A stretch of 64,000 nucleotides of DNA from Leidyana gryllorum EB-2025a (GCA_048772705.1 JBLWGC010000230.1:1302001-1366000); one strand, 5' to 3'; positions 1 through 57,461 are shown, counted from the first letter of the stretch. Made by a program: numbers and translations. Notes: generated from the sequence alone by a model not told the origin.

Positions 1-3000
1 TCCACGGAGAAGTTTAACTTTGAAAGATGGATAATAACTCGTCGATATATCTTCTTCCTGATGCGTGAAGCTAACAATGTCATTGATCTGGGTCTGGAGA
101 GAATATTGCACCAGATCTGGGAATTATCGATCCCTGATTTTGGCGTACCGAAGATCCGACGCCTACTGCGAGTTTTGGCCTCTCACTACTGGGTGGCGGA
201 ACTTGCCGTCCATCTTTTGGTCCACTTACATCATATCCAACACATTAAAGTCGACAAAGCGGTCTTGAGACTGCTACGCTCTATACATAAGAAAGAGCCG
301 TTAACAGTTGCTCGTCTCCGTCAAACCAAGGATTTGGAGGACGCGGTCGCAAATTACGATTTTGATGACCCCCGCCGAAACGCTCCCCCTCCAGAACCTC
401 CAAGTCTGGGCCGCATCTTCCTTCCACTCATCCTCTACACGGAAATCCGAGACTACGATGCGAGCTTCATGATCGACTGGGTCGAGTACTACGTCGCCAC
501 TGCCCAGTGTGAGCAGTTGACGATCCCAAACGCCTTCTGGCCTGACAGTACGCCACCACTGTCTGACGACGAACTGGAGGACGACGATGTGTCGTTCGCT
601 GGCGGTAACCTCGCGACTGGGCGTACTAGCTCGATCAGTCGAAAGGACAGTTCAACGGATGGACCGCCTGGATTCGAACGTATGGTGCAAAGTGGGATGA
701 AGCAGGTTGCTTCAGCTGAGGAACGGACACGTGAGAGGGGGCCTCGAGGTAATGTTCACCAGGCGAGTTCGTGGCCGTTCCGGAAGAGGCAACTCTGGAG
801 TATGTTATTCCACGACGGGGTACGAGATGTTTATCCCAAGCAGGGCGGTACTGATGTGGAGCTGTTCCTGTGTTGCCTGTGGGGTTTGACAAGTCACTGT
901 TGGGGCGTTTGTCCTCCCGAGAATATCATCAACAAAATGGAGGAGCGGATTCAGTGGTTCTCACACCGGTTCACGGAACTGTGCCGATCTGGAGGCAGCA
1001 GTGGCGGTCATCGGCGGTCTCTCCCTTCTGCAACAGCACCGTTACTCCGCAATGACTTGCTGCGGCCCCAGACGTTCTCTGTGATGAGCAAAGAATTGAC
1101 CAATCACATCAAATTGTACGACACCCTCCACCGATGGCAACCGGTGGACGGCGCCCATCGGCCCGCGGAGCTGGAGAAATTCGCTGCGATCAAACATGTG
1201 GACAAACTTCCGCGATGGCAATGGCTTTTCGGTCACGGCTATATGCTCAGTTTGTGCTACAAATACGTTGAGGCCCCTTCCTCAGACTTGTTGGTCGGCC
1301 GTCTCAAGTCTCACATCTCTCGTATTCGTTTGAAACAAAAGGAGGTGATGGACGAGCTTCCCGCTGTACTGACAGCTCCTCGCAAAGTGAGTCGAGCAGC
1401 CGCTCAGCATCTTCCCCTGGTGATGGTCCCGGGCGAGAGGCTGACGGTACATCGCGCAATGGGAGAGGTGACCTTCCAACGTCTCGTCACTCACATTATT
1501 CTCCACACCGGATTCCTACTGAGGAGCACCGTGGTGAGGCATATAGTGGAAGAACTGTATGTCGGGCTGGCACCCTTCTGTTACGCGGGAATGGACGGGT
1601 ACCAATTCCTGCGAAGTTGGTTCAGAACTGTGTTGGTGCGGGTCATAACATATGAAACCTTCAAGGTGTTCAAACAAGATGCGGTTGAGTTGCTGAGTTA
1701 CCTGAACACTCCAGAGATCACAACGATATTGACCCCGCGAGTGGTGGAAGAGGCGAACTTGATGATTTTTATGTACGCGGGGTTCCGGACGAGCGAATTG
1801 GCATTCGTCAACTGTATGATGTCGAGATTACTAAGGTGGGCGAACCATCTGAATCGCAGCCCCTACATGGCACTACTGGTGAATAAGTTGAATGTCTTGG
1901 CAACGTTGGCGGATGAGGCCAGCTTGTCTTGGAAGCACTATGATGGGCTCGTCAAATACGAGAACATCTACCTGCCCTTCCTGAAAACTTGTGTAAAACG
2001 CTGTCGATGTGATCCTGAAGCTTTGCTCCGAGACTGCCACGTTGTCGATATGCGACGTAAGATGGGGCGACAGTTCCGGTTCGCCGGCCCGGACGGGCAG
2101 GTCGAGTACGGCCACATCTGTCCTGATTGTGGGAATGTGATGAATGTCCAACAGTTCCGAGATTGGTACCTGAAGGCCAGCGCAGTTCGCACAGAGAAAC
2201 CACCCCTCCAAGAGTATTGGGACTTTTACAAAGTGGATCCTCTGTCTAATTTGGTGACTCAGTTGTGTTCCCATTTGGGTCTCCCCCCACACGTGGAACC
2301 CACTTTCCAGTCCCTGGTGGTGCCACTCGGAGTGGAAACAGAATATCGTTTGACTCTGGGCGATCTCTTGAGATCTAACATTGTTGAGATACAAAAGGAT
2401 GTGTGGATCTTTATGGCTTACCTAATTGCATGTGGCCGAGTTGTGGGTGTCCCGACGACATACCATAGTTTCCCGCAAGGGGTCGATCTGGACGAGCTGT
2501 TCTGTTACAAATTTGTCAGTGCCATTGTGTGCGGTGTGCTAGGTGGCTACGATGAGCTTTCGCTTACTGATATAAGTGAGGTGTTTCGGTCGGATGCCGA
2601 GATTTCAGCGATCCGCGTCCTGACGATGCTGAATCGACTCTTGACATTGAGGCTCATCGGACAGCCTCGATACAATTGGATGTACCGAATCATCGTTAGC
2701 CGCGTTCTCCGTTGGGCATGGATAAAGAATGCCGCTGGCCCAGTCGCCTATGGTATGATCTTCATCCACGGCATGACGAGACTGGTTGAATTGATGCCCA
2801 AGAAACCGAATCCCGCCGAATGGATCAAATATGTGGAGGAGCGAGAGAAGAAGTACAGTCGAGACACATTGGAAACCCTCGGGCGTCTGGGGATTGTGAA
2901 TCCGGACGCTCAGCCGACCACGAAACCGCGACCAGTGCACGAGGACCCTGACAATCCGTACTACGGCTACGATGGTGACTTTCACATAGACGAGCTCGTG

Positions 3001-6000
3001 TGGAATCTCAAACACGCTCATCACAATAGCAAGGCTCTGATCCTGGAGCTGAGTATGGCACAAAACTATTTGGAGGAGATTGGTCAAACGCGTGTGGCTC
3101 TAACCAATGTACTCACACACTCCCCTCTACATGTGGTATTCAAAGGCCATTGGCTCGATTGGCGTTGCTCCCCAGAAGTGAGAGGTACGGTGTGGGATAA
3201 ATGGATGGGTCGACGAGACCTCGAAGAGACTCAAGCTGAAGCCGAGAGACTGCAAGACAACGAGCTCGAATTGCCCAGAGGCATCGAGGCGGAGTATCAG
3301 TCCGATGCAATATCCAGCTTGCCAAACAATTTGACAGATGATTACTTCCTTAAGATTGCTCTGTACGCATTGAATAGTATCAACACTGTTGCACGTATGG
3401 TGAAGATTCAGTCTCTGTACCCGCCGGTGCGCTTCTTGAAGTGGGCTGTGTTTCCCTACAAGGCGAGATTCCGGTACGCGACTACCCGGATGGATGGAGA
3501 AAACGCCCTCAAGCCTCGATGTGATCGTACCAATCACAACGAAGACCTTATGCAAGATTTCTGGGCTGACTATCTGTATACCCGGCGGTGTGGCGGACAT
3601 TTGGATACGAGACAGATGCCGGATCAAAGCAAATATCACCGATTGAATCGTAGAGCGATCCGAGATCAGATGGTCCGATGGATGGAGAGATACCCGCCGA
3701 ACAAGAAATGTGAGATTCCGTGCCCGCGGCAATGGCCTGTAACCGATCCATTGGCCAAACCGACATGGTACGGCAATCGTGCCGAAATTATGAGCGCACA
3801 TGAAGAAGAGGCCGAATTGCAGAGGCTCAAAAACACAGCCCGTGCTCTGATCCGGGCGGGCAAGGCTGCCACTCGAGAAGAAGCAATGGAAATGGCCACC
3901 GAAGAGTTTGTGTTCGGACTTCCTCCTGACGAGGCCCAGACCTTATGTGAAGCGAAATTGGACTTCCATCGCTATCTCCGTTCAATGTATGAGGCTATGT
4001 TCCAGATGTACGCCTATCTGCGCTTGGAGACCCGCCCTTATGTCATGAAAGACGACTATAGGTTCTTCACTTATCGTTGTACCACCTTCCTCGGAACCCC
4101 AATGGTCGCCGATCTGGCCGTCCATCAGCTCGATGATATGCTTGAGATTACAGCCCACTGTGTCTACCTCTTAATGGGCCGTTATGTGTGTGGACCGGTC
4201 GCAGTGCTGCGTCGCACACTGGAGCAGGCAGTCAACACGGTAATTAAGCAGGTGATGGCTGAGAGGATCGAATTCTTGAAACAAGTCAACCTGGCCTACC
4301 AAGCTGCTTACCCAGTCCCACCTCCCAACCCGGATGCTGCGCTTGACCAAGTCATTGAGACTCTCTGTCACAGCATTGCGGCCGCCGGCAAGGGTACAAC
4401 GCTCCAACATCTTCCATCGCAACAATTCAAGTTTGCGACGCTCGTGAATGCTCTCCAGGCCGATCCAACATGTCTGAATCGCCCCGAAAGATGGATGGAC
4501 GAAAAGACTGTCTTTGAGGTTCAACCGGACTCATTGCACACCGCACATCGCGGAATCGGCAGCCACAGTTTGACCAGGTCTTATTGGTGGATCATGACAC
4601 TCCGAGGGGCCGCCATAGGGATGGCCGAACATCTCAAGCGCCAACCCGCGTTCACCGACCCCTACGCCCTGCGCAGAATGACCACTCCGAGCTTCGAGAC
4701 GCTGCTACGAGAGCGGTCCAAAGATGTCGTTGAGACCTCTCTCGGTCTTCACTATCTCAAGGCTTACGAAGAGGTGATCTTGGCCCTCACTGAAGGTTTG
4801 CCCACCGAAGCTGCGAAGATCGTGTTGCACAAAGTCGTGGCCATATGTCCGCGGGGATACTTCCACACCAAGGCATTCACAGATGTATGGCTCAGTCTCA
4901 TGAATATGGACGATAAAGAGGATCTGAGTGATTCGGTGCTGCTGAAAGCGCTTGAGACATACACCAATCACTACCGACCAAATGTTTCCTGGCAGTCGAT
5001 GCCCACTGGGTGGCCAAAAACGTATCCCTTCCCGCGTTTGGCGACAGACAGAGCAACACAGGCCGCTAAGCTGCTGCTGGACTCTGCATACATCCATCGA
5101 CAATATAAGGTCATCGCTCTGCGTACCCAGAAGTTTGCGAAACGGCCCGTGAAGCAACGATGGGTGCTCAAGAAGACCCACACGGACCTCATGAGACCCG
5201 GTGGGGTCATTCCGAAATTGCTGTACGATATTCCTGAAAACTATTACCTCGATGTCGATTGGGATGCATATTGCCGCATCGAACCCACAACTCAAGAGGC
5301 ACTGCAGGTCAAAGTGTTGGCCACAAAACCAAAACCCCATGGTGGTGACTTTGACTATCTTCCCAGACTGTGGAGTGTCCCCGACCCTCCAGAGGGAGAC
5401 CTGCGGCCTTTGCGTCTGGTGATGGACGTAGATGCTGAGCGCGCCAAGAAGTTTAAGCCGACTCTATGTGCCCGTTGTCCGACGTGCTTTGGGAATCTCA
5501 TGCCTTTCGAAATCGATCCCGAGTTGGTGAAGGACGCTTGCGAATCGATGGAGGTCCCTCCGCCGACCAAAGCTCGCTTCTTTATGGACATTTGCAATTG
5601 CAAAGAGAACCGGATCTCACACACCCCCAGATACGATGGCGAGAGACAGCCCGTCCAGTCGTACAAAGGCACCAAAGAGGAATGGGCATTGCTGCAATAC
5701 ATGAAGGACCCCTACAATGACATCATGTGGCAGCGTATCAATCAGATAATCATCCAACGGCTTGGGTACCTCTACAGATGGGAGGACGGCGCGCTGGTAC
5801 CAGCAGCACCCCTAAGGCGACGTGATGTACTCTCCCAAGAAGACATCCCACTGTATCCTGATGACGCAGATCGCGTGCCCAACGACGACTCTCCCAATGC
5901 CCCAGCGAGAGGCGGTCGCTCCGTCGTTCACGGCATGGGATTGAAAGACGCTTGGGAGCACTTTCATTGCGGTCTGACCCTCCGTAACGGACGACTGGAA

Positions 6001-9000
6001 CCCCTGATCCAGGACGTCGGGCGCAACGCCGCCGAAGTCTTCCTTCCCCAGTTGTGGCGGAATGAGGGGGACTCAGGCGCTCTACCGATGCCGTTCGCAC
6101 TCACCAAAAGGAATGATGTCAACACCGAGGGCATTCCGATAGTGCCTGCGGAGATACCGTTGGCTATGACCGATTTACAACAAGCCTGCGACAACATACG
6201 CCCTGAATTGGTCGAGCGTCTGCCTACTTCCGTACACGCTGACTCGCTGGGCTTCCACCCGGCCTACACACAGGAAGAGCGTACCCTGCTGCTCAAGTTG
6301 CGTATGGCAGAGCGGAACGCTCCCATCAATATCGGGTGGTTCCGGATTCGACCGGTATTTGGGCACGGGCCATACGCAACACTCTTCACCTCTTCTGAAT
6401 CACTGATTCTGAATAAATTGCTCCTCCTCGGACTATGCGACACAATGCGTCCGAAGTCTCCCATGATTCTCCCCTACGAGCTGGGCACGACCTACCGAAC
6501 TATAGTCACCAACTTTCTGACGCATCACATTGTTCCGCGAGCCAAGCGGATGGCTTGGGACATCCAGGCTCTCCCTCCTCCCAAGTACTCCCCTTCGGGC
6601 GTTGAGTTGTTCCAGCACGACCCGAAGCTGATGACTGAGCAGGACATAGATTCGGATGAAACAGAGTCCTCAGTGTCAGACGAGGTAGAAAAAGTCGAGT
6701 TTGAGGCTGTGGACGATCTGTTCTCCGCGTATCCGAGGGCCAATGCCAGTACCCGCGCATTAGTCAAATTCCTGGAAGGCGATGAGCTCATCACTCATGT
6801 GGGAGAGCACACCGAGCGGATCCTTTACCTCGACAGAGCACAAGCCACCCTTCCACTGCTGATTCAACGTGCTCTGCAGGAGGGAAAGCCCCTTCAAGTC
6901 AATGTAGTCGCCGCTCCTCCACCAGTTGTCAAGGCGATTGGCACCACCACGGCCGATGCCGGCGGCTCTGAGGAGAATCCGTCGTTGGAGGAAGAAGGAG
7001 AATCGAACAACAAGTTGTCGAAGATCCAAGAAGTCTGGGGCAAACATCCGAACCCGCCTCCCGGGAGAGCTCTCCAGGCTTTTGTGACTCTGCCAGACGG
7101 TACCTCCGTTGAAGTACTCCCTCGCGTCCGCAAGTTGGACTGCCGACTGATTCCCAGCGAAGCTCTCGGCGTCTTGGATAAACTCTTTGACGGCGTTGAG
7201 GGAGACGAGGGAATGCGAGCACAGCTCTTGTCGTTGTATTTGACGTGGCCGAATGCGGTGTTTGAACAGGGCGATGATTTGGACGCGCTGCTCACCAATC
7301 GGTTACAGTGTTACGTCCACCCAGAGACGGGCCGCAAGTGTCTCCGAGTACCACCAATCAATGTCAAAGGGCTGAGAGCTGTCATCAGAAGTCTTGAGGA
7401 AACCGGGAAGCTACCAGCCGTACAAGACGAGATTGGCGTCCAAACTAATGAAATAGTGTACTATTCTACGCCGGAGGTCTTCTTCCCGATCAGTGTTTTC
7501 GCTACCACCGATCGCCGCCGGATTCCCTTCTACGACTCTCTACAGCTTGCGGCTGCGGCGAGACGTCGTTTGTGTGCTGTGAGGCGGTATGCCCGCAAGC
7601 GGGCTATAGTCAAGACGAACCGCTGGGAGCTCGGTCACCTAGCGAGGGGACGGAAGCTCACATTACCCGTCATCACTCGCCACTCGAGACCCGTGACGGA
7701 AAAATGGATCAAGCGTCAGGTTGTCGGATCAACTGGCCATCCCTTCAGACGACTCAACAGGCAGGCCAGAGTTAATCTGTTCAGACGTATCCAAGACCAT
7801 TTCCACAACTGCACGCGAAACTATCGGTTATGGAGGCTCAAGTTGAATAAGACTACACCACTCTTCTCTCCGTGGCCGTCTCCAGAGGCTCATCTCGTCA
7901 CCCTCCTGGCCGAAGCCAAAGCTCGATGGGCAGTGAAAACCAGAGGTGTGACTGTATCTGTCGAGGCTGTGACGGAGGACGTGGACATGGATCTCGAAAA
8001 CCAGTCAAGTCTTGCTAATGTCGGACCGCTGGTAGACATATCGCGCCCACCGTCCAGTCCCGAGTTTGTGAGGCCCAAACATGTGTCTGATGACTTGCGC
8101 AGGTCTGTTATGTGGGATGCGGGCGCTGTGCCACAAATGCTCCCGAACGTCAAAGGCCAACCACCTCCTCATTACGCAATAGGCCAACTCCCCAATATGG
8201 CGATGGCTGCCGGTCCAATGGTCAGTCGTGGGGCACCCAACGATGATCCGCTGCCTATGCCACGAAGCCGTATGCCCTATGCGGTTCCGACACAACCGTC
8301 ACAAGAGAATGTGCTACCCAAGAGCTCTTTCAAACTGACGAGACAGGAATGCACCTACGATAATCAAGTGTTGAACGCTCGAGACCAGGAGCCACCACGA
8401 CAGGAAGAGGTACCACGACAGGAAGAGGTGCCACGACCTCATTTCCCTCAACAGGTGCCCGATCACTACGAAATGCCCTTAGTGGCTGGGCCTCGACGTG
8501 GCCTTGTGACACGTTGTCTCCCTCAGTCGCCACGCCGACCTCCCTTCCCGCGAGACTACCTGGACGACGAAGCGAACCCAGAAGAAGTACTGCCGTTCTC
8601 TCCGTCAATCCAAATGGACTGGCATAAATATGAGATGGTGGGTGGAGTGGTGCCTGACAGTCCCGACAGTGAGACGGTACCTCGAGTCCGAGACGAAGGC
8701 AAACGCTCGGAAGCCGCCCGAGAACCACCGTTGCCCTATCACCAACAGTGGGGTCCAATCTCACCTCCAATCTCAGTCGATGGATTTGAGACGCAGAATC
8801 GTGGGACGAGACGTAGCCTTGAGGACAGCGATTGTCCTCCACCGGGATTGGAGGGCGTCAACCCTCGGTACCAACCACCGCCACCACCTCCTCGACAAGC
8901 AGTGACAAACGTTCAAGCGACCCAAACGAGTCCTGAACGCACCTTGTCTGCTGCTGAAGAGAAGCCGGCAAGGCCGAAACGAGTCAACTTGACAATGAAT

Positions 9001-12000
9001 CCTGCATTGTGTATCAGTGTCTCGGGTGAGAAGGTCTTTGCCTTCTTACCCCCTGGAAACCATTCCATCTATCCGCAAACGAATGCTTACACACGCATCA
9101 TGAGGGCGATGCCTGGGACCCCCCGCGCGGCACCTAACATGCCACAAGTAACAGTGGGGCCGTTCGGCTCCGCACTTCCACCTCTACCGCCTCCTCTTGC
9201 ACCACCGCGACCTCGTAGTATGCACATCGAACCGGAAGATGCCGTCATCCTAACGATACATGACCACCCAGTTCCTACATTCCAGCCCCATACCATCTTG
9301 TCCCAAGAGGCGCCGCCCAGACCTTACAATCTGCCGAGGAATCTTCCTCCTCCGATCGACACCACGCCCCTTCCCAAAGCACCTCAAGCGAAAGCCATGC
9401 AACTAAACAGACCGTCCAACGCGGCAGGACCCTCCAGGCAAGATGTTCGGCCTCCAACGCAAAATGTTCGGCCTCCAACGCAAAATGTTCGACCTCCAAC
9501 GCAATATGTTCGACCTCCAATGCAAAGTGTTCTACCTCCGACGCAGCATGTCCGACCTCCAACGCAAAATGTTCGACCTCCAACGCAAAATGTTCCACCT
9601 CCAACGCAAAATGGACCAGGAGCTGGAAACTCAGAGAAGAAAGAGGCAGCGGACGCTCGAGGGGAGACTCGCAGAGGAAACAGAAAGAAGCCTTCTCCAC
9701 CGCCGTCTGACCCTGGCGACTCCTCCGGGTCATCGGACGAGGGCGACAACAAAGAAAATGCCGACGCTCACAACGATACTTGCATGCCGGGCAATAAAGC
9801 TCTGGACATATTCGAAGACTATCGCCCCTATGTCCAGCCCGGCTCAGTGTGGGCAGGAAAGAAGAAGAGAAGAGTTTACGATCGTTTCGATCAGAAGGAG
9901 ATCGCTTCCACACACGCGTGTGCGTTCAGAAACATACCTTCAATTCTGCGCGAGCAAACCAAGTGGACCGAAGATGCCCAGCTGTTGAACGAAGCTTGTT
10001 CATTCGTCCTACCTTGTATTCGTGATGCACGAATTGTATTCGATCCTGAGGAGGCAAGCAGGGTGGTGTCTGCGTTACGAGCGGCATGTCATCAGTGGTA
10101 TTTCGAACGCGCTACCAAGATGCGTCAGATGAGATACACATCTCTGACGGTGGCGAACCCGGCATCGATTGTACGACGAGTGGAAGCAAGGAAAAGAATG
10201 CCCAGATTGGGGCCTTTTGGCTTCGAGCCTAGTCGATTCGTGTGGACCGAGCACATAGATCGTGAACAGGCTGCTAAAGTCAAGGCCGAAATCAGTGATC
10301 TGATTGATGATGGATGTTGGGCAGAATTCTTGGCTGACTCTACACCGGTTCCGTTGTGTTATTTCTTCCCGGCTTCATTCGAGTGGCCATCAAACTTTGC
10401 GATAAATCAGCCCGATTGCCCCGAGATGGACATACCATTCTCGCAACGTCCTGAACCGGAACCGGCCTTCCCCGGATGTGCCGGATACACAATTGGCACT
10501 GTATGGATCAGGAAAGCAGCTGGCAGTAAAGAATTGATGGACCTGTTGGTGAACCCTGCCAAATGCAGAACCTGGCCAGAGATATCAAGCCTGATTGTTG
10601 CCTTGACCTCGGAATTCAGCAGCCTGCATCCACTCCGGACTGCATACGAGCATTCCAGAGAGAATCCGGCTTTACCGGAAAATGCAGTGATCGCTGAAGG
10701 AGTTGGGTGGGGTGATATTGAGCTGCACAGTTTGAGTGTTCCTGCCGATCCGCAAGAGAAAGCGACGTACTCGTCTAAACTGAAGTGGGAACGAGAGTCT
10801 AAATCTGAAGGACTCATTTCGCTGTTGCAATGTTATGGTGTACCAATGTCTAGTGACCAACCTGTGATCAGTTCAACAACTCGTGATAGCGGACCCATAC
10901 AAGTACCAGCTCAGTCGTCACCAACTGTTGCAACAGTACTCTTTGCTAATCTGGCCGATGAGGATGGCACTGCACTGCAGGATCTCCAGCCATTCAGTCC
11001 CGTTTGTACTCGCAAGGAGGAACAGGCCGCTCCCCCGCGTGTGTCTGGCGTCACATCAGATGTTGATCAAGATGGCGGCCGTAGTGCAGCTTTTGGTGCT
11101 CAACAGGCTGAGGTTAACCAGACGAGCGGAGTTACGAGCTCAGAATCCAATCAACCTGCACTCGCCATGGATTGGAACCATCGGTGTGCTGATGGGACTA
11201 ATCCGTTCGACCGAGATGTGCAGCGACTTCCAACGAACTCGGCTGCAAATCATGACACTTTGGCGGTCAGCGAGCCGCCGCAACGGTCCGAAGTCCGCCA
11301 AGACTTGTGGGATTACGCGGCCAGCCATGTGATACCGATCCTGCGACGCATGTTGGAACGACTGGCCATGGCCACAGACAGGCAGAGCATGGCGGAGTTT
11401 GCCTCGGAACGAAATTACTACTTACAACAACTGTTACGAGCACTAATGGGATGGGAACTTCAGGCACATTCTGGTGTTATGGTGAAACCGCATGACGTAA
11501 TGACTGTACTCGGAACGCTCCCGCCTTCCACACAAGTACCTGTATTCGTGGCACAGCACAAACGATGTTTCTGGCACCCTTCGGACTCCGAAAACAATGA
11601 GGAAGATATTGTCACACCTCGACAAATTCGGAACCAGCAGCAGCCTAACGAAGAAGCGCAGACCTCCGCTGTATTCTCTGAGTTGGTATATGAGGAGGCT
11701 TTCCTTGCCCGTCAACGACCGCAAGTAACTTGGAACGCAACACGGGATCATCGTGCGCGTTTAGGGGCAGCCTTGCGCCAAGCGCAAGGTGTCGGGGGCG
11801 GCAACCACGATCACTTGGCACAGCAGAGTCTGCTGACACACACCACCAATCAGCACCACGCTGGTGTCCACCGTGCTGCCGATGGCGGCCCCTATGCAGC
11901 CCATGTTCCGGTCGTGCGGCGAGCACAGGTTCCTAGCATTGAAGCCCAGGTCACCTTTGGAGACAGTCAGCCGGGTGCGGACCAGACATCGGATGACGAA

Positions 12001-30000: not shown

Positions 30001-33000
30001 GCACCTGGAGCTGAGAAGTCTCATCTCGGAGCTTCCGCTGATGCCAAGAAGAAGAGTGCGGGCCCAGTAGAGACGCAGACACCCCAGCGAATTGCGGTTG
30101 GAGGGACTGACAACTCAAATACGGAGCCGTCTCGTGACACATCATTGTTGCCCGGTTCCGGAGCTCGAGTTCATTCTACGGAGACGACACGCTCGAAACA
30201 GATGGAGGCTTCCGCCCCTCGAAGAGTCCGCTCGCCCCCGAAAAATGACCCATCTCGGACACAAAAGGGTCCGAAGGGAAGAGGCCGCAAGTTAGACTCT
30301 GAAGCACCGGTCTTGAGGCAACCTCTACAGTCGCCAGAAACCAAACGAGACCTGAAGGGGGTCCCGCCTCCCGAGAATAAGCGACCGGGAGCGTCGCTGA
30401 CACAGACGCCATGTTCGACTAAGGTTGAAAACCTCCAGAGGGGCAACGTCCCGAAAGTGTGCAAAGAAACCGAGGGTATCGCAGATCGTGGTGAGCCTCA
30501 GCAAGGTCCAAGTGAGCGAGATCCCGTCTCTCCCGCTACGGTGTCGGTTAAGAAAACTGTACAGGCTGAAAGTGGTGCCCCCCCAGTGGAAAAGATCCAG
30601 GCGACGCCCAGAGACACATGCCCACCCAATGTTGCTGAGGAACCGGTTGAAAACGCTAATTTGGCAGAGCAACATTTGGGTGAAGACAATCAGTCCCCAG
30701 TCGCGCCAATTACAACCGGTGGGAAGTCACAGGCTGCCACACCTGCAGCAGAAGTTCGCGAAAGAGAAGAGCACCAGGGCAAAGGGCGGCCATGTGAGCG
30801 TCTGATTCCCCCCACTGGAGCAGCCCAACCAGCCTCTGCAGCTCCCCTGGATGCTGGCAACGGAGTGCAGTGCACAACCACTGAGGGAGACAACTCAAAG
30901 GAGAACTTGGCAGCGATCAATGAGGAATCACACAAAGCTGCAAGAGAAACCGACAACAATGTCACGATGAAAGCGAAAGGCGGCGAATGGAGAGATTTGG
31001 TTGTCAGACCCGTACTGCTGGAAGGAGGTTTAGAGCACCCCAGAGATATTGAAGGAAAGCCGGAGAGTTACAAACGATCAAAGCTGTCGCCGTACGCGAG
31101 CCACAAACCAGAAGTGGAGTTCGATTATGATGATCTGAGCTCGGAGGATATTCGGTCCAGCGCGAAAGCTGGAACAGCGGAGGTCGCGACTGCCGGTGTG
31201 ACCAGCAGCCAAGCAGCGATTTCGCAAATCCACACTGAATCGGCGTCTCCTCCAGCCTCCGACCCACCCCCGCCTTCGAGTCGACGAGAACTTCCCATTG
31301 AGATCAACCCCGAGCCGGCTGTGCAACTTCGTCATAACGAGGAAGACTCGATCGACAGTGCGAGTGAGATCATGGAGGACGACGACGACTCGAGTAGGAA
31401 GGAAGACGAGCCAGAGGCCGACGATAGTCAAGATGATGAGCAGTCACCAAGTGGAGGTGAGGAGCCCGGCTTGAGGCCACAGTCTTCGGTTCCGCGATCC
31501 GAGTTTGGACATATAAGTGTGAAGCAGCAATTTATCGAGAGTGTCCGAAGCTCCTCCCGCTCGTCGGGCTCCGTTGAGCAGAACGAGCTCCAGGAGGAGG
31601 TCAGTGAGCAGAGTGGTCTCGACTCGGGTTTTGAGTCTCAACAGACAGACCAGGAGCTTCCTAAGGAAGCGGAAGATACTATTGATGAGCAAGTCGAGGA
31701 GAAGGTGGTGTCTCCGGCGCCTTGTCCCGCTGCCCCTCGGCTCCCCGTGAGGTTACCCTCAAATCAGCAAACCCCTGCTGTGAGCCGACCGCCGTCTCAG
31801 GGCTATGAGAACGCGTATCGCGTCAATGGTGGTGCTTGGGGCCCGGAATACGAGCGGAACGGCCCATGGGAGACTGCTCCGCGATCTCCGTTCGCTCCAC
31901 CTATGCCTATCAGATACAATGTTCCGCCCTCAGGCAGCTATCATTGTGCCGCGGCCGTGGGAGGTGTGGTTCAATACGTTCCTCCTCCTGGTGAAATACC
32001 CACAGCTGTGGCTGGAGTGGCGATAGGGACTCCGTTCATGGGTTACAGTTTCCAGATCACCTTCAGCACCCCTGCGTGGTTGCCGCCGCCGTCGATCGGA
32101 ACCCCGAGAATGCATCCGGTAGACATGTCTCCACAAATGGGACCAGCCCAACCACCACCTGCACCCTTCACTCCTATGTACCCTGGCCAGTCCCCCTACG
32201 GCCCTCACAGCCACCCAATGGCTGATCAGATGTACGGTGTATATGGCCCTCGACCACCAATGAATTACCATCCAATGCCTCATCCGTCTTACCCATACTC
32301 CATGGGCTTCCAGCATCTATACGCTCCGCCATCTCCTGCTCCAGTATACCCAACACCGCTCGGGGCTGCGCCTTACCATCCGTATGCCGATGCCCAAAAT
32401 CAGACGTGGGCAACAGGCCCTGTGTGGCCCAGCGGGCATAATCCGAATATGGTACCCCACGGCTATCCACCTGCCGCTCCCGAGACAGGTGGAGAACGAG
32501 GGGCAGTACCAATGCCAAACACAAGCAGTGGAGCTCCACACTATTCCCAAGGAGGTGAGATTCCCTTTGGAGCCCTGTTAGGACCACAACGTTCAATGTC
32601 AGTCGGATACGAGGCCTCAGAGGCACGGTTCAACCCACAGGAAACGGTGCTCAGTTCACAGATACCGTCCCAACAGTCCAATGTCGAGCACTCGGGAAAG
32701 ATGAGCAATGTAGTTAGCATGGATCCAGCTGCTGACACTCATCCGATTGTGACAACAACGACACACAATGTAACCACCAGCGTCGCAGATGATCAGGAAG
32801 ATGACGTAATCGTGGAGCAAGGATGGAAGTTTGCCCCAGCTGAAGAGGCTCGGACTCAGACTCGGACTCAGACTCAGACTCAGACTCAGATTATCGAGAA
32901 CGTCTTCGTTGGGCACACTGGAGATGAACCCGTTAATATGGAGGAATACGAGTTGGTAGAAACTATCGTAGTGGACGAATCTGATGAGGAAGCGGAGGGT

Positions 33001-36000
33001 GAAGAGATCGAAGCAGATCGCTCCGAGAGCGAGGGTCAGGCAGACCCCTCCGAGAGTGAGGGTCAGGCAGACCGCTCCGAGAGCGAAGACCGCTCCGAGA
33101 GCGAGAGTCAGGCAGACTGCTCCGAGAGTGAGGGTCAGGCAGATCCTTCGGAGAGTGAGGGTCAGGCAGATCCTTCGGAGAGTGAGGGTCAGGCAGATGC
33201 TTCGGAGAGTGAGGGTCAGGCAGATCCTTCGGAGAGTGATGGATGCTCTGACGGTGTCCAACTTGGAATCACGCGACGTAACAGCTCATCGGATGATGAG
33301 GGTGGAGATGATGGTGGCCAGCACTTTGGTCCTTCTCAGGGTGGGAGAGGAGGTATGCAGTCGGTTGTTCACACTCAACAGAATGAGAGCCATGGAGGGC
33401 ATCGCAAAGGTGGCCAGACGAAGGGTCCCGCTCGGCAGGCAGCTGACGTGGACGCTCAAGAGCAATCACCAGGTCAGCAACCATTGAAGTGGACAGTATC
33501 AGCTGGTGACCGCAGTCCTGAGCCGGAGAGGCCTGATATAAGAGGAAAGGATCATTTAGGAGGAGAAACAGATGTCGACAGAAAGCCCCCCGGCACCAAC
33601 AATGACAATGAAGTTGCTACGGATGACCGGAGCACATATGATTTTATATGTCAAACGACAATGGTACATCGGAGCGGATTATCAATGAGTACGATTTCGC
33701 CAAACCCGGGATCGGCGACCCCAACCGACGGCGGATTTGTGGGATCTGAAACCATCAATGAGGATGGAGAAAGTATCGCGCGTACAGCTTTTGTCCTCCG
33801 AGGCCAAAACCTAACTACCAGTGCCGGCAAAAGCACAGTATCTGCGTGTCTTCCTGATACCTCAACCCGCACTGTAACGAAAGTGATAAGTGTTGAGTCC
33901 GTATCTCTGAAATCGCAGACAGAGTTCAAGGAGACGAGCACCAGTCCAGCCAGCTTGTCTGAAGTAGAGAGTGTGTACAACCTCAGCATCACAAATGCTG
34001 TCACGAGCCCTCTCAGGACCGCCCGCAGCACCCCGTGTCGTGGTACGACGAAGAAAGATGAAACCTTAATGGCCCAGGAGCCCTGTTCCGCCCCTCAACG
34101 ATTGAGTGAGATGTCTCCTACGGTGGAGGATGGACTGGCAGCCTTTGAGAAGGAACGTCAGCAGTACATTGAGTTTATCGCGGCCAAAAGGGCAGAGATA
34201 ACTCGAAAGATCCTCGCATGGCAACCTGAGGGGGTAGAATTGAGTCCAACCATTCGATTGCAAGAGGAGGAGGAAGAAGAAGATGAAGCTGCATCGTCAG
34301 TTGAGGGCATCAAGACTTGGTGGTTCGACGATGACTCACCCCCATCAAACGAAACTTATGATGCCGAGGACTCTCTGTTGACTGTGCACGGGAAGATCGT
34401 CAGACACTTATACATGTCGGGCCAATATGGCGACTGTGACGGCCACCCCCCACTGCCCCCAGGAAGACGTCGAGTGTTCATGTGGCACGGCCCACAGCCA
34501 CTGCATGAATCGGTTGTGGACGGAGAGAAGTTGGTGGACTTCACCGCCCCGATGTGTCGACTAGATACCAACCAAGGGAAATTAGTTCTATGCGCCCAGA
34601 GGAGTAGAGCGCGCAAAAGCCTTCGAAGAATCTTAGACAACATCTGGCGCCGACCCGACAACTTCCCACGAATGGACTCAAGGGGCTGGCAGAAGATCCA
34701 ACCTTTGTTAATGACTGGAAAAGTGACCGAAAAGTTGCAGAGTGAAGAATGGCCCTGTATCATTCGCGACCTTTCCCTCTCTGACTTTTCATCTCCCGAC
34801 GAGAGCGACGATGACGCTCCTGTTGCTGCTGCTCCACCGGTACAAGGGTCCCCGTATAGCCCCGAGACCTCGCCGGACAGTGGTTCTGTAGAGGATGACA
34901 CAGATTCTCCTGACCAAACGGCTCCTGTGCCGCCATTACCAATTCCTGAGCTCAAGTCCGGAGACATCACATCCCCCGTCACCCCAAGTTCCGAGGGTCA
35001 CAGCCCGGAGCAGTCAGGCCCCACGGGATGTACTTCCGATCCGTACGCCACTCGCCACGGCAGTCCGGTTAACCACGGCACCGCTGAGCATAGTCCCGAT
35101 CCGTACGCCACTCGCCACGGCAGTCCGGTAAAGTACGGCACTCGCCAGGACAGCCCAGATCAGTACGCCACTCGTCACGGCAGTCCGGATGAGCACGTAA
35201 TTAGTCCGGATAGTCCCGATCAGTACGACACTCGCCACGGCAGGCCGGATTGGTACGCCACTCGCCACGGCAGTCCGGATGAGCACGTAATTAGTCCGGA
35301 TAGTCCCGATCGCCACGGCGGTCCGGATCGGTACGATACTCGTCAGGATAGTCCCGATCAGTACGACACTCGCCACGGCAGGCCGGATTGGTACGCCACT
35401 CGCCACGGCAGTCCGGATGAGCACGTAATTAGTCCGGATAGTCCCGATCGCCACGGCGGTCCGGATCGGTACGATACTCGTCAGCATAGTCCCGATCAGT
35501 ACGACACTCGCCACGGCAGGCCGGATTGGTACGCCACTCGCCACGGCAGTCCGGATGAGCACGTAATTAGTCCGGATAGTCCCGATCGCCACGGCGGTCC
35601 GGATCGGTACGATACTCGTCAGCATAGTCCCGATCAGTACGACACTCGCCACGGCAGGCCGGATTGGTACGCCACTCGCCACGGCAGTCCGGATGAGCAC
35701 GTAATTAGTCCGGATAGTCCCGATCGCCACGGCGGTCCGGATCGGTACGATACTCGTCAGCATAGTCCCGATCAGTACGACACTGGCCACGGCAGTCCGG
35801 ATTGGTACGACCTTCGTCAGGATAATCCCGGTCAATACGACAGTACTTGCCAGGACAGTCCGGATCAGTACGGGACTCGCCAGGGCAGTCCGGACTGGGA
35901 AGACGGTGGTGAGGATAGTCCAGATCGGTATGGAAGTGGCGAAGGTAGTCCGGTTCAGTGTGAAAGTGATGAGGATGATTGCGATATGGAGTCCCCGCCT

Positions 36001-39000
36001 ATCTGCAAGTCTGGAGGGGACTCTCACTCCCCACCCGCTCGTTGCAAATCCGGCTACGAGGCATCAGTTGATGAGTTTGTTGAGCCCGTCGACTCGCCAG
36101 CTCTCGTACTGACCCCTCCGCTTGATGAAGATGATGAAAATGTGTTTGTGGGGCGTGATGGAGATGTGTTGATGGTGAAAGATCGCGAGGACGGCGATTA
36201 TAGGCCTGCGGTGGGGCGTGATGGAAATGTGTTGATGGTGAAAGATCGCAACCACCGCGATTATAGGCCTGCGGTGGGGCGTGATGGAAATGTGTTGATG
36301 GTGAAAGATCGCAACCACCGCGATTATAGGCCTGCGGTGGGGCGTGATGGAGATGTCGACTCGCCAGCTCTCGCACTGACCCCTCCGCTTGATGAAGATG
36401 ATGAAAATGTGTTTGTGGGGCGTGATGGAGATGTGTTGATGGTGAAAGATCGCGAGGACGGCGATTATAGGCCTGCGGTGGGGCGTGATGGAAATGTGTT
36501 GATGGTGAAAGATCGCAACCACCGCGATTATAGGCCCGCGGTGGGGCGTGATGGAGATGTCGACTCGCCAGCTCTCGCACTGACCCCTCCGCTTGATGAA
36601 GATGATGAAAATGTGTTTGTGGGGCGTGATGGAGATGTGTTGATGGTGAAAGATCGCGAGGACGGCGATTATAGGCCCGCGGTGGGGCGTGATGGAAATG
36701 TGTTGATGGTGAAAAATCGCAAGCACCGCGATTATAGGCCCGCGGTGGGGCGTGATGGAGATGTCGACTCGCCAGCTCTCGCACTGACCCCTCCGCTTGA
36801 TGAAGATGATGAAAATGTGTTTGTGGGGCGTGATGGAGATGTGTTGATGGTGAAAGATCGCGAGGACGGCGATTATAGGCCCGCGGTGGGGCGTGATGGA
36901 AATGTGTTGATGGTGAAAAATCGCAAGCACCGCGATTATAGGCCTGCGGTGGGGCGTGATGGAAATGTGTTGACGGTGAAAGATCGCAAGCACGGCGATT
37001 GTAGGCCCGCGGTGGGGCGTGATGGAGATGTCGACTCGCCAGCTCTCGCACTGACCCCTCCGCTTGAGGAAGATGATGAAAATGTGTTTGTGGGGCGTGA
37101 TGGAGATGTGTTGATGGTGAAAGATCGCGAGGACGGCGATTATAGGCCCGCGGTGGGGCCTGATGGAGATCGCGAGGACGGCGATTATAGGCCCGCGGTG
37201 GTGTCGAGAGCTATGGAGCTACTGGAGATGTATCAGTTGCGATGGGCTGCCAAGACGAAGGAGATGCGGGAGGCGCGTCTGCAAGAGTTACGTGAAAAGT
37301 CACAACAGCGTAACTTTGATGCATCAGAGATCGTGGGGTCGATGAAGGAGGTACCCCGACCACAGGGCGCCATATGTGACCAGTACGGGCTCTTTCGTAG
37401 TTTTACTCGATTTGATCATATCAATTACAACCTCGGTTGGTTGCAAATCCACCCCCCCGATGGCCGCTGTTCTCCCGACTGTGTAGGACCTCGTTTTGTA
37501 CTCTTTCCAGAAGGATCACATCTCTTTGTCCACGACTCCAACATTGTTCAGCGGTACATCAAGACGGATGAGAATGGGTTCATGCCGGTGGTTATTTGCA
37601 TAAGCCTGACAGACGAGGACATATTGCCTTTTGGTGAAGAGGAAATATTATGCGGTCACTCTCATTGTCGGGGAGGGTTCAACAAAGCCATGGGCGACGT
37701 TCCACTTTGGTATCTGAATGGACACAGCCCACTCGATCCCGTCTTGCTGGGAGGTCCGAGAGAACCATTCCCTGACAACGAGGCTCAAATTATCATGGCT
37801 CTGCGTCCCCGTCCTTTCCGATATCGACTTCCGCCCCCCCATCGAGTCGAAGATGTGTCAACGGCTGAAGTGGACGCGGCTCACGCGTCCTATAGGTTCG
37901 ATTTACTCCAAACTCGACAGAGGAAGAGAGCTCTCTCACTGCCGACAAATCGCTCACACTCAAGATGGATTGAACACAATCGACCAGAGAGAGCTCGATC
38001 AGACTTTGGTGGCGACGGCGATCAGTTCAACGAAGGAGGTTCGGGCAATGGAGACGATCCATTCACTCCCATCCCAGCACAGGCCACCAGCAGCAACCCT
38101 CAGCCGATATATCAAAAGGGACGAAGCTCAGGCCCGATGAAAGAGCTGTTGCGGTGTCTCCAAATGTCTCGCGAGCAGCAAAGCTGCGAGAGTTCACTTC
38201 AGGGTGACCGGCCTCAGCGCCCGCGGCTGCCAATGCCGACTCTCGGAAACGAAGATTACATGGCTTATGGTAACAAAGAGTCTGCGCTTCGACAATCGCT
38301 CGGTGGGGCCGCCCAAGTAGTAGAGTTTGCCTACGAGTCTATGTCCAGCCCAGAAGGGATTGACTTGTCGCCCGAAGAGTCTCCACCGGATGGAATCGTT
38401 TTCTACGAGGAGTCGCCGCCTCAAGACACAATCATTTTCTACGAGGAGTCCCCGCCTCAAGATTACCCCTATGAAGAGAGTCCTCCTGGCGAGACCGACC
38501 CATATGTCCATCGAGACTCCCCACCTGATACAGCGGAAGTGGGATACCTGCCTGACATGAGTCAACAGAGACGTCAAACAGCTCATCGTAGGAGCAACGC
38601 GGAGTGTTTTGCGTACGCGATGGAAGATGAAACCGCCAGTGACTATGAGCCCCGTAAGTAACCTGACCTGAGCTGTCTCCTCACCATTGCGCGCTTCTGT
38701 AGAACTGTTGCCTACCGACCACCACCAGATGGTATCTTTGATGCGACCTGTTTTCGTTGATGTTGCCAGCGACGACAGTTGCAGATTGCACAGCTCCTCG
38801 TCCGCAGGCTCGCGGGCATTGGCGACACCACACTTCCGGCAATCGTCTGTCTTCGTCGATTCCCCTCCGGCTACTACCCCGCAGCCCCCCTCAGGCCGCG
38901 AAGATGCTCCAGCCGTTATATCTGTTGGCACACCGACTGTTCGAGCCGTTATATCCGTGGAGTCGCCCACCACTCTCCCGGCTCACACCGCTCAGTCTCC

Positions 39001-40771
39001 CGCGAGTGACGGGACTGCTCGATCCGTTATATCTGTCGATGATGAAGATTCACCCTGTACAGTCATCGATATCTCAGCCACCCCTCCGGCAACTCCCGCT
39101 TCGCTTCCCGCCAAAGACCATTGCGTGATCGATGTGAACGACTCGCCACCCCGTGCAGGGCGGGAGGACAAATCGTGTGATGATGTGAGGAGTCGAGACA
39201 GCGATGTCGAAATCATCGAATCACCTCGACATGTAGTGAATTATCTGACTGACCGTAACAGAGGTGGCGAACTTTCCTTTCGGACTCCACCAAGCTGCAA
39301 TGTAAATACAATACCTTCCGTTGTACCAGTCCAGACAGCAAAGTCGTGCCCTGTGAGACACGCTCTTTCCCCTGACCTGTCACCAAGTCCGCAGATATCT
39401 CGTCCCGCAGGCGCACCCCCACCGCCCCCTCTCTCTGCGTTGGCACGTCTCCACGTCCCGACGAACGAGCAGACCTCAGCAGTTCTGACCACTCCCCGAC
39501 CAACCGGAACTGATCGTGAATCGACACCCGGAGCCACAGCAGAGTCGCCGAAGATTGTTGGCTTCTCGCCGAAGATTGTTGCCTCATCGCCAAAATCCGC
39601 CGGCTTCTCGCCAAAGATTGTTGCCCCATCGCCAAAATCCGCCGGCTTCTCGCCAAAGATTGTTGCCCCATCGCCAAAATCCGCCGGCTTCTCGCCAAAG
39701 ATTGTTGCCCCATCGCCAAAATCCGCCGGCTTCTCGCCAAAGATTGTTGCCCCATCGCCAAAGGCCATTTGTGTACAGCCGACTTCTCGAGTGACGGAGA
39801 GATCTGAGGATACTGACAGTGTGCGAAGCTCGCCGAACTGTCCGCTCGTGACCCCTCGCCCAGATTCGGTGGAAGGAGTGTCGAGCCCCATATCGCACGA
39901 AGTCGGTCGCATAGTCGCAGAGTTGAGAAGAACGGAAGCCCACTTTAATTATAATGCCGTTCCAAAGTCCGCATTGCATGAATACTATACTGAAACTCCT
40001 ATGTCCACGTTACAATTGGGATTTGAGCCCCGTATTGGGTTACCAGCTGAATGCTTAGATCAGTACATGTGTACCTTGGCGCTATGTTGGGGGTGTTGTC
40101 GCTTCGGCGAGCGATTTGGTTTCTTACTACCGGCTCCAGAGACATCGCGTTCTCATGAGCAGTGCGATGCGAACGCAATATTCGACGGTATCACCCGACT
40201 GTTGCAGTTCCCCGAAGAAATGGAACAGTTATGGGAGATGGTGACAGTACTCGGTTTATTACTCGATGAACCATCTGTTGGAGTCCAAGACGTTGAGAGA
40301 TACGTTGAGAAGTTGCGGGCTACACCGTTGATGGAGATGCTGACTTTCCTTCACTCTGTGGGAGGAGTGAAACCGCGCGAAGTTGTGGCTGCAGCGTTTC
40401 ACAAATCGATTCTAACTACGTCAGAATTGAGTCAGATCCTTCGATTTTGGGATCTGGACTCACGAACTCGCACCTACAAGTCGCTACGGTTGCCATCAAA
40501 TAAGCAATGGTCAGGATCTTCTGCCTCGTCTTCGAGTCGTGCGGGACGAGCAGCTGAAGGCCCTACGCCCCGGCCCAATGCCTTTGATAGGTTGTCAGAA
40601 GGTCAAGAGGTCGGGCCTATGTGGCAGGCAGCCGAGTTGACTGGTGATCCTATCCCACCAAACCGCGTCCTGGGCCGAGCAGACTCGTATGCAGTGATCG
40701 GAGAAAGTGTTGGACACAATGTGAGGCGGTTTCCGAGCAACGTTAGTGAACCTTGGGAAGATCATTTATGA
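1..40771 (+). CDS. Giant protein of unknown function, at least 13,573 aa, probably 5'-incomplete; exon <=1..38653, intron 38654..38702, exon 38703..40771
   Basis: Frame 1 is open from base 1 (STEKFNFERWIITRRYIFFL precedes the ATG at 61) and stop-free to 38661. GTAAGT at 38654 and TGTAG ending at 38702 define a 49-nt phase-1 intron; C|AA CTG TTG CCT joins the frame of ORF 38687..40771, whose listed start is a non-ATG TTG. Confidence 0.85.
9439..9612 (+). repeat. 21-bp coding tandem repeat (VRPPTQN, about 8 copies)
   Basis: gttcg(g/a)cctccaacgcaaaat units visible directly. Confidence 0.9.
17029..17145 (+). repeat. Poly-Glu/Asp acidic tract (GAA/GAG/GAC)
   Basis: About 38-residue run EEEEEEDEEEEED... 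Confidence 0.9.
19800..21500 (+). repeat. FG-repeat-like array (MTGSLFGQPTSTTTGDTAASG / GGLFG) with a 237-bp higher-order unit
   Basis: Repeated atgactggatcactctttggcca; identical antisense ORFs begin at 20445, 20682 and 20919 (period 237 nt = 79 aa). Confidence 0.92.
21766..21836 (+). repeat. Short (P)SSIF(A/G) repeat, about 4 copies
   Basis: tcatcaatatttgcccct units. Confidence 0.75.
24625..24710 (+). repeat. 15-bp perfect coding repeat (KPTDA, 5-6 copies)
   Basis: aagccgacggacgca tandem. Confidence 0.92.
28135..28280 (+). repeat. 54-bp coding repeat (DVIVLPPPPPAPVSVGST, about 2.7 copies)
   Basis: gacgtaatcgtacttcctcccccgccaccggcac repeated. Confidence 0.9.
33013..33240 (+). repeat. 27-bp coding repeat (ADxSESEGQ, about 8 copies)
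   Basis: gagagtgagggtcaggcaga units. Confidence 0.9.
35038..35900 (+). repeat. Y(A/D)TRHG(S/R)PD nonapeptide array with a 138-bp higher-order repeat
   Basis: gagcacgtaattagtccgga at 35281, 35419, 35557 and 35695 (period 138 nt = 46 aa). Confidence 0.92.
36088..37200 (+). repeat. Composite repeat VDSPALALTPPLDEDDENVF + (VGRDG(D/N)VLMVKDRxxxDYRPA)n, five units
   Basis: gtcgactcgccagctctc at 36088, 36355, 36559, 36763 and 37030 (spacings 267, 204, 204, 267; difference is one 63-bp subunit). Confidence 0.92.
38374..38490 (+). repeat. (Y)EESPP repeat, 4 copies
   Basis: EESPPDGIVFYEESPPQDTIIFYEESPPQDYPYEESPP. Confidence 0.8.
39545..39763 (+). repeat. 42-bp coding repeat (FSPKIVAPSPKSAG, about 5 copies)
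   Basis: ggcttctcgccaaagattgttgccccatcgccaaaatccgcc tandem. Confidence 0.92.
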
Positions 40772-40795: not shown

Positions 40796-41738
40796 ATGAG
40801 AATTTGGTTGCTGCACCTGTATCCCCTGCTTGCCTTGGGCGCGGGGGGCAGTGCAAGCCACAATGCCGTTAGTATTAGACTGGCGAGCTATAACAATGAA
40901 GACGTCACCGCCAACATAAAAGCTTTAGCTGCCCTGGGTCGAGGTGTTAACAACTTTGAGTTGGTACATTTGACTCCGACACCAACCTCAGCTTTGTCCA
41001 CCTATGTGACCCACTTTACTCCATCAGAAAAAGAGGACCTGCACGGATGGTTGTACAGCCGCTATAGGAACATTAGTGCCATTTTGCCAATCCGATCTTT
41101 GATATTCAGTGACCCCATGGACACCGCTCTGGATCTGTGTGGTTCACTGAGTCGGCAAGGCTTAGACAGCTTGAACTTTGTTATCGATGACTTGAGTTTT
41201 GAGTTGAAACATTTGACACGAGGTGACATCAGATGGCTGATCCCTTTCCTGGCCACCTGTCATACTGAAGTTCCTACCTTGAGCTTGACGCTCCCGCCCA
41301 AACTTTTGACCCCAACTACCCGAGAGGGGAACAGCTTCTTTCCTGTGTTCAGAGCAGTCAATACATTGGTGCATAAGGTGTATCTTCAGTATTTTGGACA
41401 GGTAGGTGGTGCAAGGGATAAAAGCAGAATTACTACTATGGCAGACAGAAAGTTTGTACAACAACATGACTGAGATATTTGCCAGACCCGATACTGGCTG
41501 GGACGCGATCGTGCAAAGAACATTCCCTTGGTTCAAAGGAGGTGCTAGGCGTTTGGTGGTATCAAAATCCTTGGAAACTGGCAGCGACGGATTTGTTGCT
41601 GCAAAACAGTTGAAGGCTATTCTTTGTTCTGCCACACAGGAGTTCGGATATTCGGGCGACGTGAGTGTGGACTACATCGCTCCTTTGAAGAAAACAGCAC
41701 AACAAATTGAGGTTCTAGCTGGTCCATGCCATAAATGA
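40796..41738 (+). CDS. Secreted protein, probably a degenerate GH18 chitinase-like TIM barrel (299 aa; intron 41402..41444)
   Basis: Signal peptide MRIWLLHLYPLLALG. A 43-nt GTAGGT..GCAG intron joins ORFs 40796 and 41406 in frame. GLDSLNFVIDD, VYLQYFGQ, RLVVSK..GFV and GYSGDVSVDY echo GH18 strands (xDGxDxDxE, NVQFYNQ, KLVIGKP..GY, GGVMxW). Confidence 0.55.
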
Positions 41739-49746: not shown

Positions 49747-49763
49747 TAGTCAAAAAATCTGCC

Positions 49764-57348: not shown

Positions 57349-57461
57349 CTTATCGCGATACTATAACAACCTTAATCAGTGATTGACAAGAAATGTACCA
57401 AAACCCTAATATCAGTACCCATGAGCTCAAAGTATGTGTGCGATGTCCCACAGGTGCCTTA

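Follow-up and report, generated by a model that had tools for sequence, protein, structure and literature searches.

The locus and gene model

The 64,000-nucleotide stretch considered here, referred to as the window, lies in the genome of Leidyana gryllorum EB-2025a (GCA_048772705.1, JBLWGC010000230.1:1302001-1366000; contig C230 below). From its first base to position 40771 the + strand is occupied by a single giant gene, which begins upstream of the window and carries, about midway, a block of phenylalanine-glycine (FG) repeats of the kind found in nucleoporins. Frame 0 is free of stop codons from window base 1 to 38658, as an earlier note on this DNA had reported for 38.6 kb, and continues without a stop 2,094 nt farther upstream, as far as C230:1299907, giving an uninterrupted frame of 13,584 codons when window and upstream DNA are taken together. 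With 457 and 671 stops in its two other reading frames, this stretch would stay open over such a length by chance with a probability of 1e-202 to 1e-299. Unspliced, the frame terminates at a TAA at 38659-38661. Splicing out the 49 nt at 38654-38702 joins it in phase to a downstream open frame of 2,066 nt and adds 688 codons, in agreement with the extension of about 690 codons that had been anticipated for an intron of this length. The upstream extension proposed in the same note revealed two short putative 5' exons in addition to the longer frame, and by sequence inspection the first ATG is at C230:1299354 rather than at window base 1. The earlier size of at least 13,573 aa accordingly stands as a lower bound, although the gene starts upstream of base 1 and the present model encodes 14,391 aa. 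The four exons are phase-consistent and sum to 43,173 nt, or exactly 14,391 codons, corresponding to a protein of ~1.58 MDa. The model, in which the 5' exons and their introns are candidates drawn from sequence inspection only, is as follows (open reading frame, ORF, residues are numbered throughout with residue 1 at C230:1299907):

C230:1299354-1299578, + strand: predicted exon 1 (225 nt), upstream of the window
Between exons 1 and 2, + strand: candidate intron 1 (62 nt, GTAAGC..CAG)
C230:1299641-1299797, + strand: predicted exon 2 (157 nt), upstream of the window
Between exons 2 and 3, + strand: candidate intron 2 (131 nt, GTATGT..CAG)
From C230:1299929 (2,072 nt before the window), window part 1..38653, + strand: exon 3, the giant exon (40,725 nt), a stop-free frame
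38654..38702, + strand: intron 3 (49 nt, phase 1, GTAAGT...TAG), placed by the in-phase join to the downstream frame
38703..40771, + strand: exon 4, open frame 38705-40768, stop codon 40769-40771

It is very improbable that this model stems from mis-assembly of its repeats, that the locus is silent or decaying, or that the frame conceals in-frame introns. Some of the arrays described below are 95-99% identical, such that their copy number could be mis-assembled, and one possible in-frame intron candidate of 93 nt is present in the giant exon at 25625-25717. However, mis-assembly of arrays would alter the length of the gene and not its existence, the gene contains no Ns and is located inside a 1.73-Mb contig, coding composition extends throughout, and a decaying locus would not keep 13,584 codons open.

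Coding signature and origin of the giant exon

The distribution of GC content over the three codon positions (GC1, GC2 and GC3) follows the order GC1>GC3>GC2 in every 3-kb slice of the gene except one, at 18.9-21.9 kb, which contains the FG array and in which GC2 exceeds the other two, and the overall codon-position GC of the gene is that of the neighbouring genes. All 42 of the 42 rows returned by Tandem Repeats Finder for positions 1 to 41000 have a period divisible by three. Donor-like hexamers are depleted from the giant exon, at 0.29/kb in the sense direction versus 0.61/kb antisense and 1.21/kb over the remainder of the + strand, and no tRNA or Rfam family was found inside the gene. The giant gene is a real, native, single-copy coding unit.

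A foreign gene, whether acquired horizontally or from a virus, or a retroposed one, as the earlier note had envisaged, would account for 40.7 kb of intron-free sequence in an intron-dense genome and for the lack of homologues. The codon-position composition is nonetheless the same as that of the neighbours, spliceosomal-type introns are present at both ends of the model, and donor-like hexamers are depleted from the sense strand of the exon, so that an origin of either kind is unsupported. Neither a viral, bacterial or mobile-element domain (Pfam) nor a match in a metagenome scan or in protein libraries was found, and this explanation must be considered extremely improbable.

The contrast with conserved genes nearby is considerable. 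The Sec24 gene, 10 kb from the giant gene (window 50.5-53.1 kb), consists of at least seven exons of ~300-500 nt with an intron approximately every 370 nt, a density from which ~110 introns would be expected in 40.7 kb. The Sec24 exons, together with a gap of 24 nt between the stop codon of the giant gene and the next ATG (40796), bear out the original description of intron-dense neighbours (Sec24; PP2C at ~44.0-45.0 kb; RPL11 at ~47.2-47.7 kb) separated by tiny gaps. The giant exon probably grew in place. Its arrays of 95-99% identity show tandem amplification directly, and young disordered sequence is likely to have accreted as well; growth in place would explain a giant exon without the introns seen in its old, conserved neighbours. 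The ratio of nonsynonymous to synonymous change (dN/dS) between repeat copies is ~0.9 in the FG array and ~2.5 in arrays of 63-nt units, on few changes, and purifying selection between copies was not seen in either. In an array of 30-nt units the ratio is 0.3 on 11 changes, indicating that purifying selection is weak at best.

The FG-repeat block and the Nup98 gene of the genome

The only feature by which the protein can be recognised, and one that was missed previously, is the following:

19699..21861, + strand: FG-repeat domain of 721 residues (ORF 7265-7985) with 24 FG motifs, mainly SLFG and GLFG

Glycine (21%), threonine (17%), serine (15%) and alanine (11%) make up 64% of this block, which contains few hydrophobic residues and 9% charged residues. 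Phenylalanine is followed by glycine in 77% of cases within the block versus 6% in the rest of the giant protein, and a count of 24 FG motifs was reached in none of 20,000 shuffles. Arrayed units of 21, 28 and 30 residues form the core of the block, and five motifs, at residues 7268, 7889, 7935, 7969 and 7975, fall outside the span identified by Tandem Repeats Finder. FG motifs are found in at least three unrelated contexts: besides the main array, these are the flank on its N-terminal side and a C-terminal flank that bears an SSIFxP mini-array of its own. The block is, then, a cluster of FG motifs within a disordered, hydrophobic-poor stretch rich in G/S/T/Q/A/N residues, which is the property by which FG nucleoporins are recognised. 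FG nucleoporins also have a structured anchor beside the FG region, in the form of a beta-propeller, an alpha-solenoid or a coiled coil. In the giant protein, judged by composition, hydrophobic-rich blocks flank the domain; AlphaFold2 (AF2) models have predicted local distance difference test scores (pLDDT) of 34 and 41, too poor to rely on, and the propeller leads are weak, as described below.

A genuine Nup98-type gene is encoded elsewhere, at C43:401512-405068, where the Nucleoporin2 autoproteolytic domain (PF04096) matches at C43:404718-405068 with 66.5 bits, the sole match in the genome. Upstream of this domain the gene carries ~44 FG motifs, mostly GLFG, in spacers rich in T/G/Q/A, a setting comparable to that of the block in the giant gene, and the domain itself is interrupted by an intron or a stop at the end of a 994-aa open frame. 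Nup96 (PF12110) matched neither downstream of this gene nor elsewhere in the genome. PF08801, PF03177 and PF12110 (Nucleoporin_N and _C of Nup133/155, and Nup96) had no match in the giant gene or the genome, and since these scaffold nucleoporin families were also silent in the control genomes, their absence says little.

An HFS tripeptide some 80 residues after the FG block raised the possibility that the giant gene is a Nup98-96 orthologue. The Nup98-96/Nup145 precursor similarly has GLFG/SLFG-type repeats followed by a folded block, and HFS occurs in both. Its autoproteolytic domain, however, spans 148 positions, for which the ~80 residues between FG block and HFS in the giant protein are too few, and PF04096 and PF12110 do not match. 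HFS occurs once in 13,584 residues, with a chance estimate of roughly 0.7. Given a single tripeptide at about the chance level in surroundings negative for PF04096, the Nup98-96 assignment was rejected.

Anatomy of the predicted protein

Composition profiles place ~7,600 residues of the protein in hydrophobic- and aromatic-rich, probably folded blocks (ORF residues 17-252, 382-3533, 3992-4337, 4956-6214, 7981-8816, 8967-9242, 9434-9988 and 12733-13322, plus smaller ones). The remainder is rich in P/S/T/E/D/G and forms disordered acidic or P/S/T-rich linkers that alternate with the blocks, and in its strongly acidic C-terminal third the protein carries a net charge of -30 to -60 per 500 aa. The gene holds no fewer than 11 mutually unrelated tandem arrays, where at least ten had been noted before; several of them are 95-99% identical. 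The main features other than the FG domain are:

1..8505, + strand: N-terminal hydrophobic-rich, probably folded region, window part (ORF ~17-3533; composition)
9431..9613, + strand: array of 7-residue units, PPTQNVR type, ~9 copies (Tandem Repeats Finder)
12772..16548, + strand: second large folded-like block, the most aromatic-rich part (ORF 4956-6214; composition)
17020..17145, + strand: poly-Glu/Asp run of 42 residues within a strongly acidic linker
21847..24354, + strand: folded-like block directly after the FG domain, with HFS at residue 8064 (ORF 7981-8816; composition)
33013..33239, + strand: array of 9-residue acidic units, ADPSESEGQ type, ~8 copies
35036..35894, + strand: array of 10-residue units, SPDQYDTRHG type, ~28 copies, with a 138-nt higher-order repeat of 99% identity
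36088..37170, + strand: array of 21-residue units, VGRDGNVLMVKDR... type, ~15 copies, with 204-471-nt higher-order repeats
38885..39304, + strand: SUMO-interaction motif (SIM)-like cluster in exon 4, six hydrophobic cores of the type V-I-[S/D]-[V/I] or VEII with acidic or Ser-Pro tails
39560..39762, + strand: array of 14-residue units, GFSPKIVAPSPKSA, ~5 copies
39887..40768, + strand: C-terminal block, exon 4 residues ~400-590 hydrophobic-rich and predicted helical, the last ~100 without predicted regular structure

Chunk-against-chunk BLAST revealed no ancient duplication among the folded blocks, only the tandem arrays, indicating that the blocks are unique sequence. No Walker A (G-x4-GK[ST]), kinase or RING motif was found in the protein. 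There is no transmembrane segment, mean hydropathy over 19 residues nowhere exceeding 1.61, and the N-terminus encoded by exon 1 shows, by eye, no hydrophobic core and no signal peptide. A secreted mucin-like or adhesin giant was considered and is ruled out by the lack of a signal peptide and of a transmembrane anchor, and by a cysteine content of 1.2%.

The six cores in exon 4 fall within 140 residues, an arrangement that none of 50,000 shuffles reproduced, and at the level of the motif they resemble clustered SUMO-interaction motifs, such that a role in SUMO binding may be envisaged. Further units composed of a hydrophobic tetrad plus acidic residues are present at window 28135-28276 (DVIVLPPPPP, three copies) and 38394-38462.

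The separation of folded-like blocks by long disordered linkers could also reflect the fusion of formerly separate genes through loss of stop codons, the product possibly still being cut as a polyprotein. The tiny intergenic gaps, with the next ATG just past the stop, are in keeping with this idea, and the Nup98-96 protein provides a precedent for a self-cleaving pore-protein precursor. Genes that had fused should, however, have retained their introns, of which the 40.7 kb contain none, and no block matches a stand-alone protein or domain. As for processing, the protein has no protease or autoproteolytic domain, PF04096 being confined to C43, and the one HFS tripeptide, close to the chance level, lies outside any Nup98-type autoproteolytic domain; the processed polyprotein suggested earlier thus finds no supporting evidence. 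Fusion, with or without cleavage, is considered improbable.

Searches for related sequences and structures

Pfam searches of the whole length at E<=0.1 gave nothing above the cut-offs. A relaxed search at E<=10, which covered the N-terminal 3,333 aa in pieces of 500 aa, both 5' exons and the last 290 aa of the protein, yielded only matches below threshold to acidic or low-complexity stretches. ORF residues 1-1200 were also compared exhaustively with 1.84 billion representative proteins by HMMER, with no match at E<=0.001. Three word-indexed searches (window residues 1-5000 among giant proteins, ORF 4956-9988 and ORF 1-3333) also returned none, their length ranges taking in proteins of ~5,500 aa, although searches of this type miss distant relatives. 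PDB sequence searches with three large segments gave nothing meaningful and a metagenome locus scan gave no match. Searches of the host genome identified no paralogue, the results being self-matches, one weak match on contig C35 and two stop-filled matches below 20 bits on contig C104. The C35 match (C35:58502-58936, minus strand) is located in a 1,012-aa open frame with 31% identity to the FG array at E 0.016, and may be T/S/G-rich or of FG type.

These results, together with the motif scans, uphold the initial statement that polyketide synthase/non-ribosomal peptide synthetase (PKS/NRPS), dynein, midasin, VPS13, Ig/Fn3 or HECT architectures do not explain the protein. Enzymatic and motor giants (PKS/NRPS, dynein, midasin, HECT, PIKK) were rejected as candidates on the basis that there is no Pfam match and no P-loop G-x4-GK[ST]. 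Indeed, only the size class is shared with PKS/NRPS, dynein, midasin, VPS13/BLTP, HECT/UBR4 and titin-like Ig/Fn3 proteins, whose Pfam domains, Walker A motifs and internal domain duplications are all lacking from the giant protein. With no relative in any search and no genomic paralogue, the proposal of a lineage-specific scaffold of ~1.5 MDa is the part of the earlier interpretation that is supported.

At the level of structure, a protein atlas returned weak beta-propeller leads for the N-terminus (WDR97, RAB3GAP2, ELYS and Med16, at 0.76-0.84, under the useful range) and no match for the middle block (ORF 4956-6214). AF2 predictions made without an alignment gave, for residues 1-1200, a model that hints at strands up to residue ~100 and at stacked helices or helical hairpins beyond it (pLDDT 34) and, for the C-terminal 294 aa, helices only (pLDDT 41), scores that render both models too poor for a fold search.

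A putative FG nucleoporin

It is proposed, at a probability of roughly 0.4, that the giant gene encodes a hyper-expanded, lineage-specific FG nucleoporin. The folding of the protein, its pore localisation and each of the functional roles discussed in this section are predicted ones. The proposal draws on the extreme enrichment of FG motifs and their confinement to a stretch of typical FG-domain composition, and on the presence of FG motifs in non-homologous flanks as well as in the array.

Precedent for such a reading is available from related parasites. Scanning Plasmodium berghei for nothing more than FG clusters (14-31 FG) yielded five Pfam-blank proteins, and all four of the four that could be tagged localised to the pore (PMC6062611). 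Helical domains flank the FG regions of these proteins; internal repeats are present in four of them, and the largest measures 5,440 aa (PMC6062611). Toxoplasma pores similarly contain many giant sequence-orphan nucleoporins of up to 593 kDa (PMC12407827). The giant protein resembles PbNup637 (PBANKA_0107600) and TgNup593 (TGGT1_313430) in being apicomplexan-type, very large and Pfam-blank, and all have an FG cluster (14-45 motifs) in a disordered region (PMC6062611, PMC12407827). Compared by description, it is ~2.6 times longer than PbNup637 (14,391 versus 5,440 aa) and ~2.5 times heavier. PbNup637 and TgNup593 are pore proteins, a localisation that is predicted for the giant protein, for which the libraries showed no similarity. 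Giant sequence-orphan apicomplexan FG proteins are a known kind, to which the present one, provisionally assigned, would add a length ~2.6 times that of the largest described, a much smaller genome and the lack of detectable relatives.

Assignment of the host to this group is based on AP2-domain loci, four of which exceed the Pfam cut-off, on no fewer than 15 alveolin loci, and on an exon encoding uL5 for which the best match among PDB sequences is 5xxb, the ribosome of Toxoplasma gondii, with 3j79, that of Plasmodium falciparum, fourth. Judged by these loci, the host genome is that of an apicomplexan-type alveolate.

A metazoan parallel is offered by RanBP2/Nup358, a cytoplasmic-filament nucleoporin of 3,224 aa that combines a structured N-terminal anchor with FG repeats and SUMO-binding elements, to which the SIM-like cluster in exon 4 would be analogous. 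RanBP2/Nup358 differs in having Ran-binding, zinc finger, TPR and cyclophilin domains, none of which was detected in the giant protein.

If the protein is indeed a nucleoporin, its N-terminal ~3,500 unique residues, along with the later folded blocks, could dock it into the pore scaffold, the N-terminal anchor probably having a beta-propeller at its start and helical repeats after it. The SLFG/GLFG block of ~720 residues would then lie in or near the transport channel, where it would offer binding sites for nuclear transport receptors, and the long, acidic, repeat-rich C-terminal third, including the SIM-like cluster, could extend as a filament. This fuller picture, in which a single 1.58-MDa chain would serve the gregarine nuclear pore as scaffold anchor, FG barrier and acidic SUMO-binding filament, functions divided among several proteins in other eukaryotes, and would be by far the largest known nucleoporin, at ~2.5 times PbNup637, and one still growing by in-exon tandem amplification, is advanced as a doubtful one.

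Several observations weigh against a nucleoporin. The FG block constitutes 5% of the protein, most of its motifs stem from a recently amplified array with near-neutral copies (dN/dS ~0.9), and FG is missing from 8 of the 20 units of that array. Charged residues account for 9% of the block versus 1.3% of the GLFG domain of the genome's Nup98, and a protein search of the genome with the Nup98 FG domain as query did not retrieve the block. No nucleoporin Pfam family matches the giant gene, very large libraries that should include apicomplexan nucleoporins show no similarity, and both AF2 models (pLDDT 34 and 41) are unusable as regards a propeller-plus-solenoid anchor.

The same features would be accommodated by a lineage-specific cytoplasmic or nuclear scaffold outside the pore, such as a cytoskeletal, cortical or chromatin tether of the large gregarine cell, in which the FG array is incidental. 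The array is, after all, just one of at least 11 unrelated arrays, its copies are near-neutral and 8 of the 20 units are without FG; 95% of the protein is not FG sequence, its C-terminal third is strongly acidic, and neither a nucleoporin nor any other family matches. Less easily reconciled with an incidental array are the extreme FG enrichment, confined to a stretch of typical FG-domain composition, the FG motifs in the non-homologous flanks, and the fact that FG clustering alone predicted pore proteins in related parasites (PMC6062611). A scaffold outside the pore is regarded as a serious possibility, if short of a probable one.

The gene fills 0.28% of a 15.5-Mb genome (237 contigs) whose intergenic gaps shrink to tens of bases, and the maintenance of 43 kb of open frame implies strong selection on a protein that databases do not recognise. 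It also illustrates clearly the growth of a giant exon, free of introns, within an intron-dense genome. As an FG nucleoporin, the protein would represent the extreme of an apicomplexan trend to oversized sequence-orphan nucleoporins, and a natural test case for the load of disordered and repeated sequence that a pore component can tolerate. Should it instead function outside the pore, it would be a large uncharacterised scaffold, with ~7,600 unique hydrophobic-rich residues, in an understudied group of parasites.

Neighbouring genes

Upstream, an M18 aspartyl aminopeptidase gene is encoded on the minus strand at C230:1297883-1299231 as a single intron-free exon of 1.35 kb (Pfam, 354 bits); it is divergent from the giant gene, with 149 nt from ATG to ATG. 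The gene directly downstream (40796-41473, + strand) has no Pfam match and encodes a protein with a signal-peptide-like N-terminus, and ESF1 is located on the minus strand at window 42.4-43.7 kb. A Pro/Gln/Met-rich open frame with seven PPQGM repeats is present at window 49743-50450 (+ strand); the antisense strand (49512-50540, minus) is also open, as is usual over repeats. Finally, the minus strand of window 56740-63738 contains at least four tandem paralogues encoding a small two-exon membrane protein. Their first exons (57079-57348, 58016-58324, 62491-62865 and 63340-63738) have in common an 'IPP.RND...IWG.CPL' start and a hydrophobic segment, and their second exons (56740-57027, 57702-58052 and 63084-63512) a common 'GGHGWERKS[FY]K' motif.

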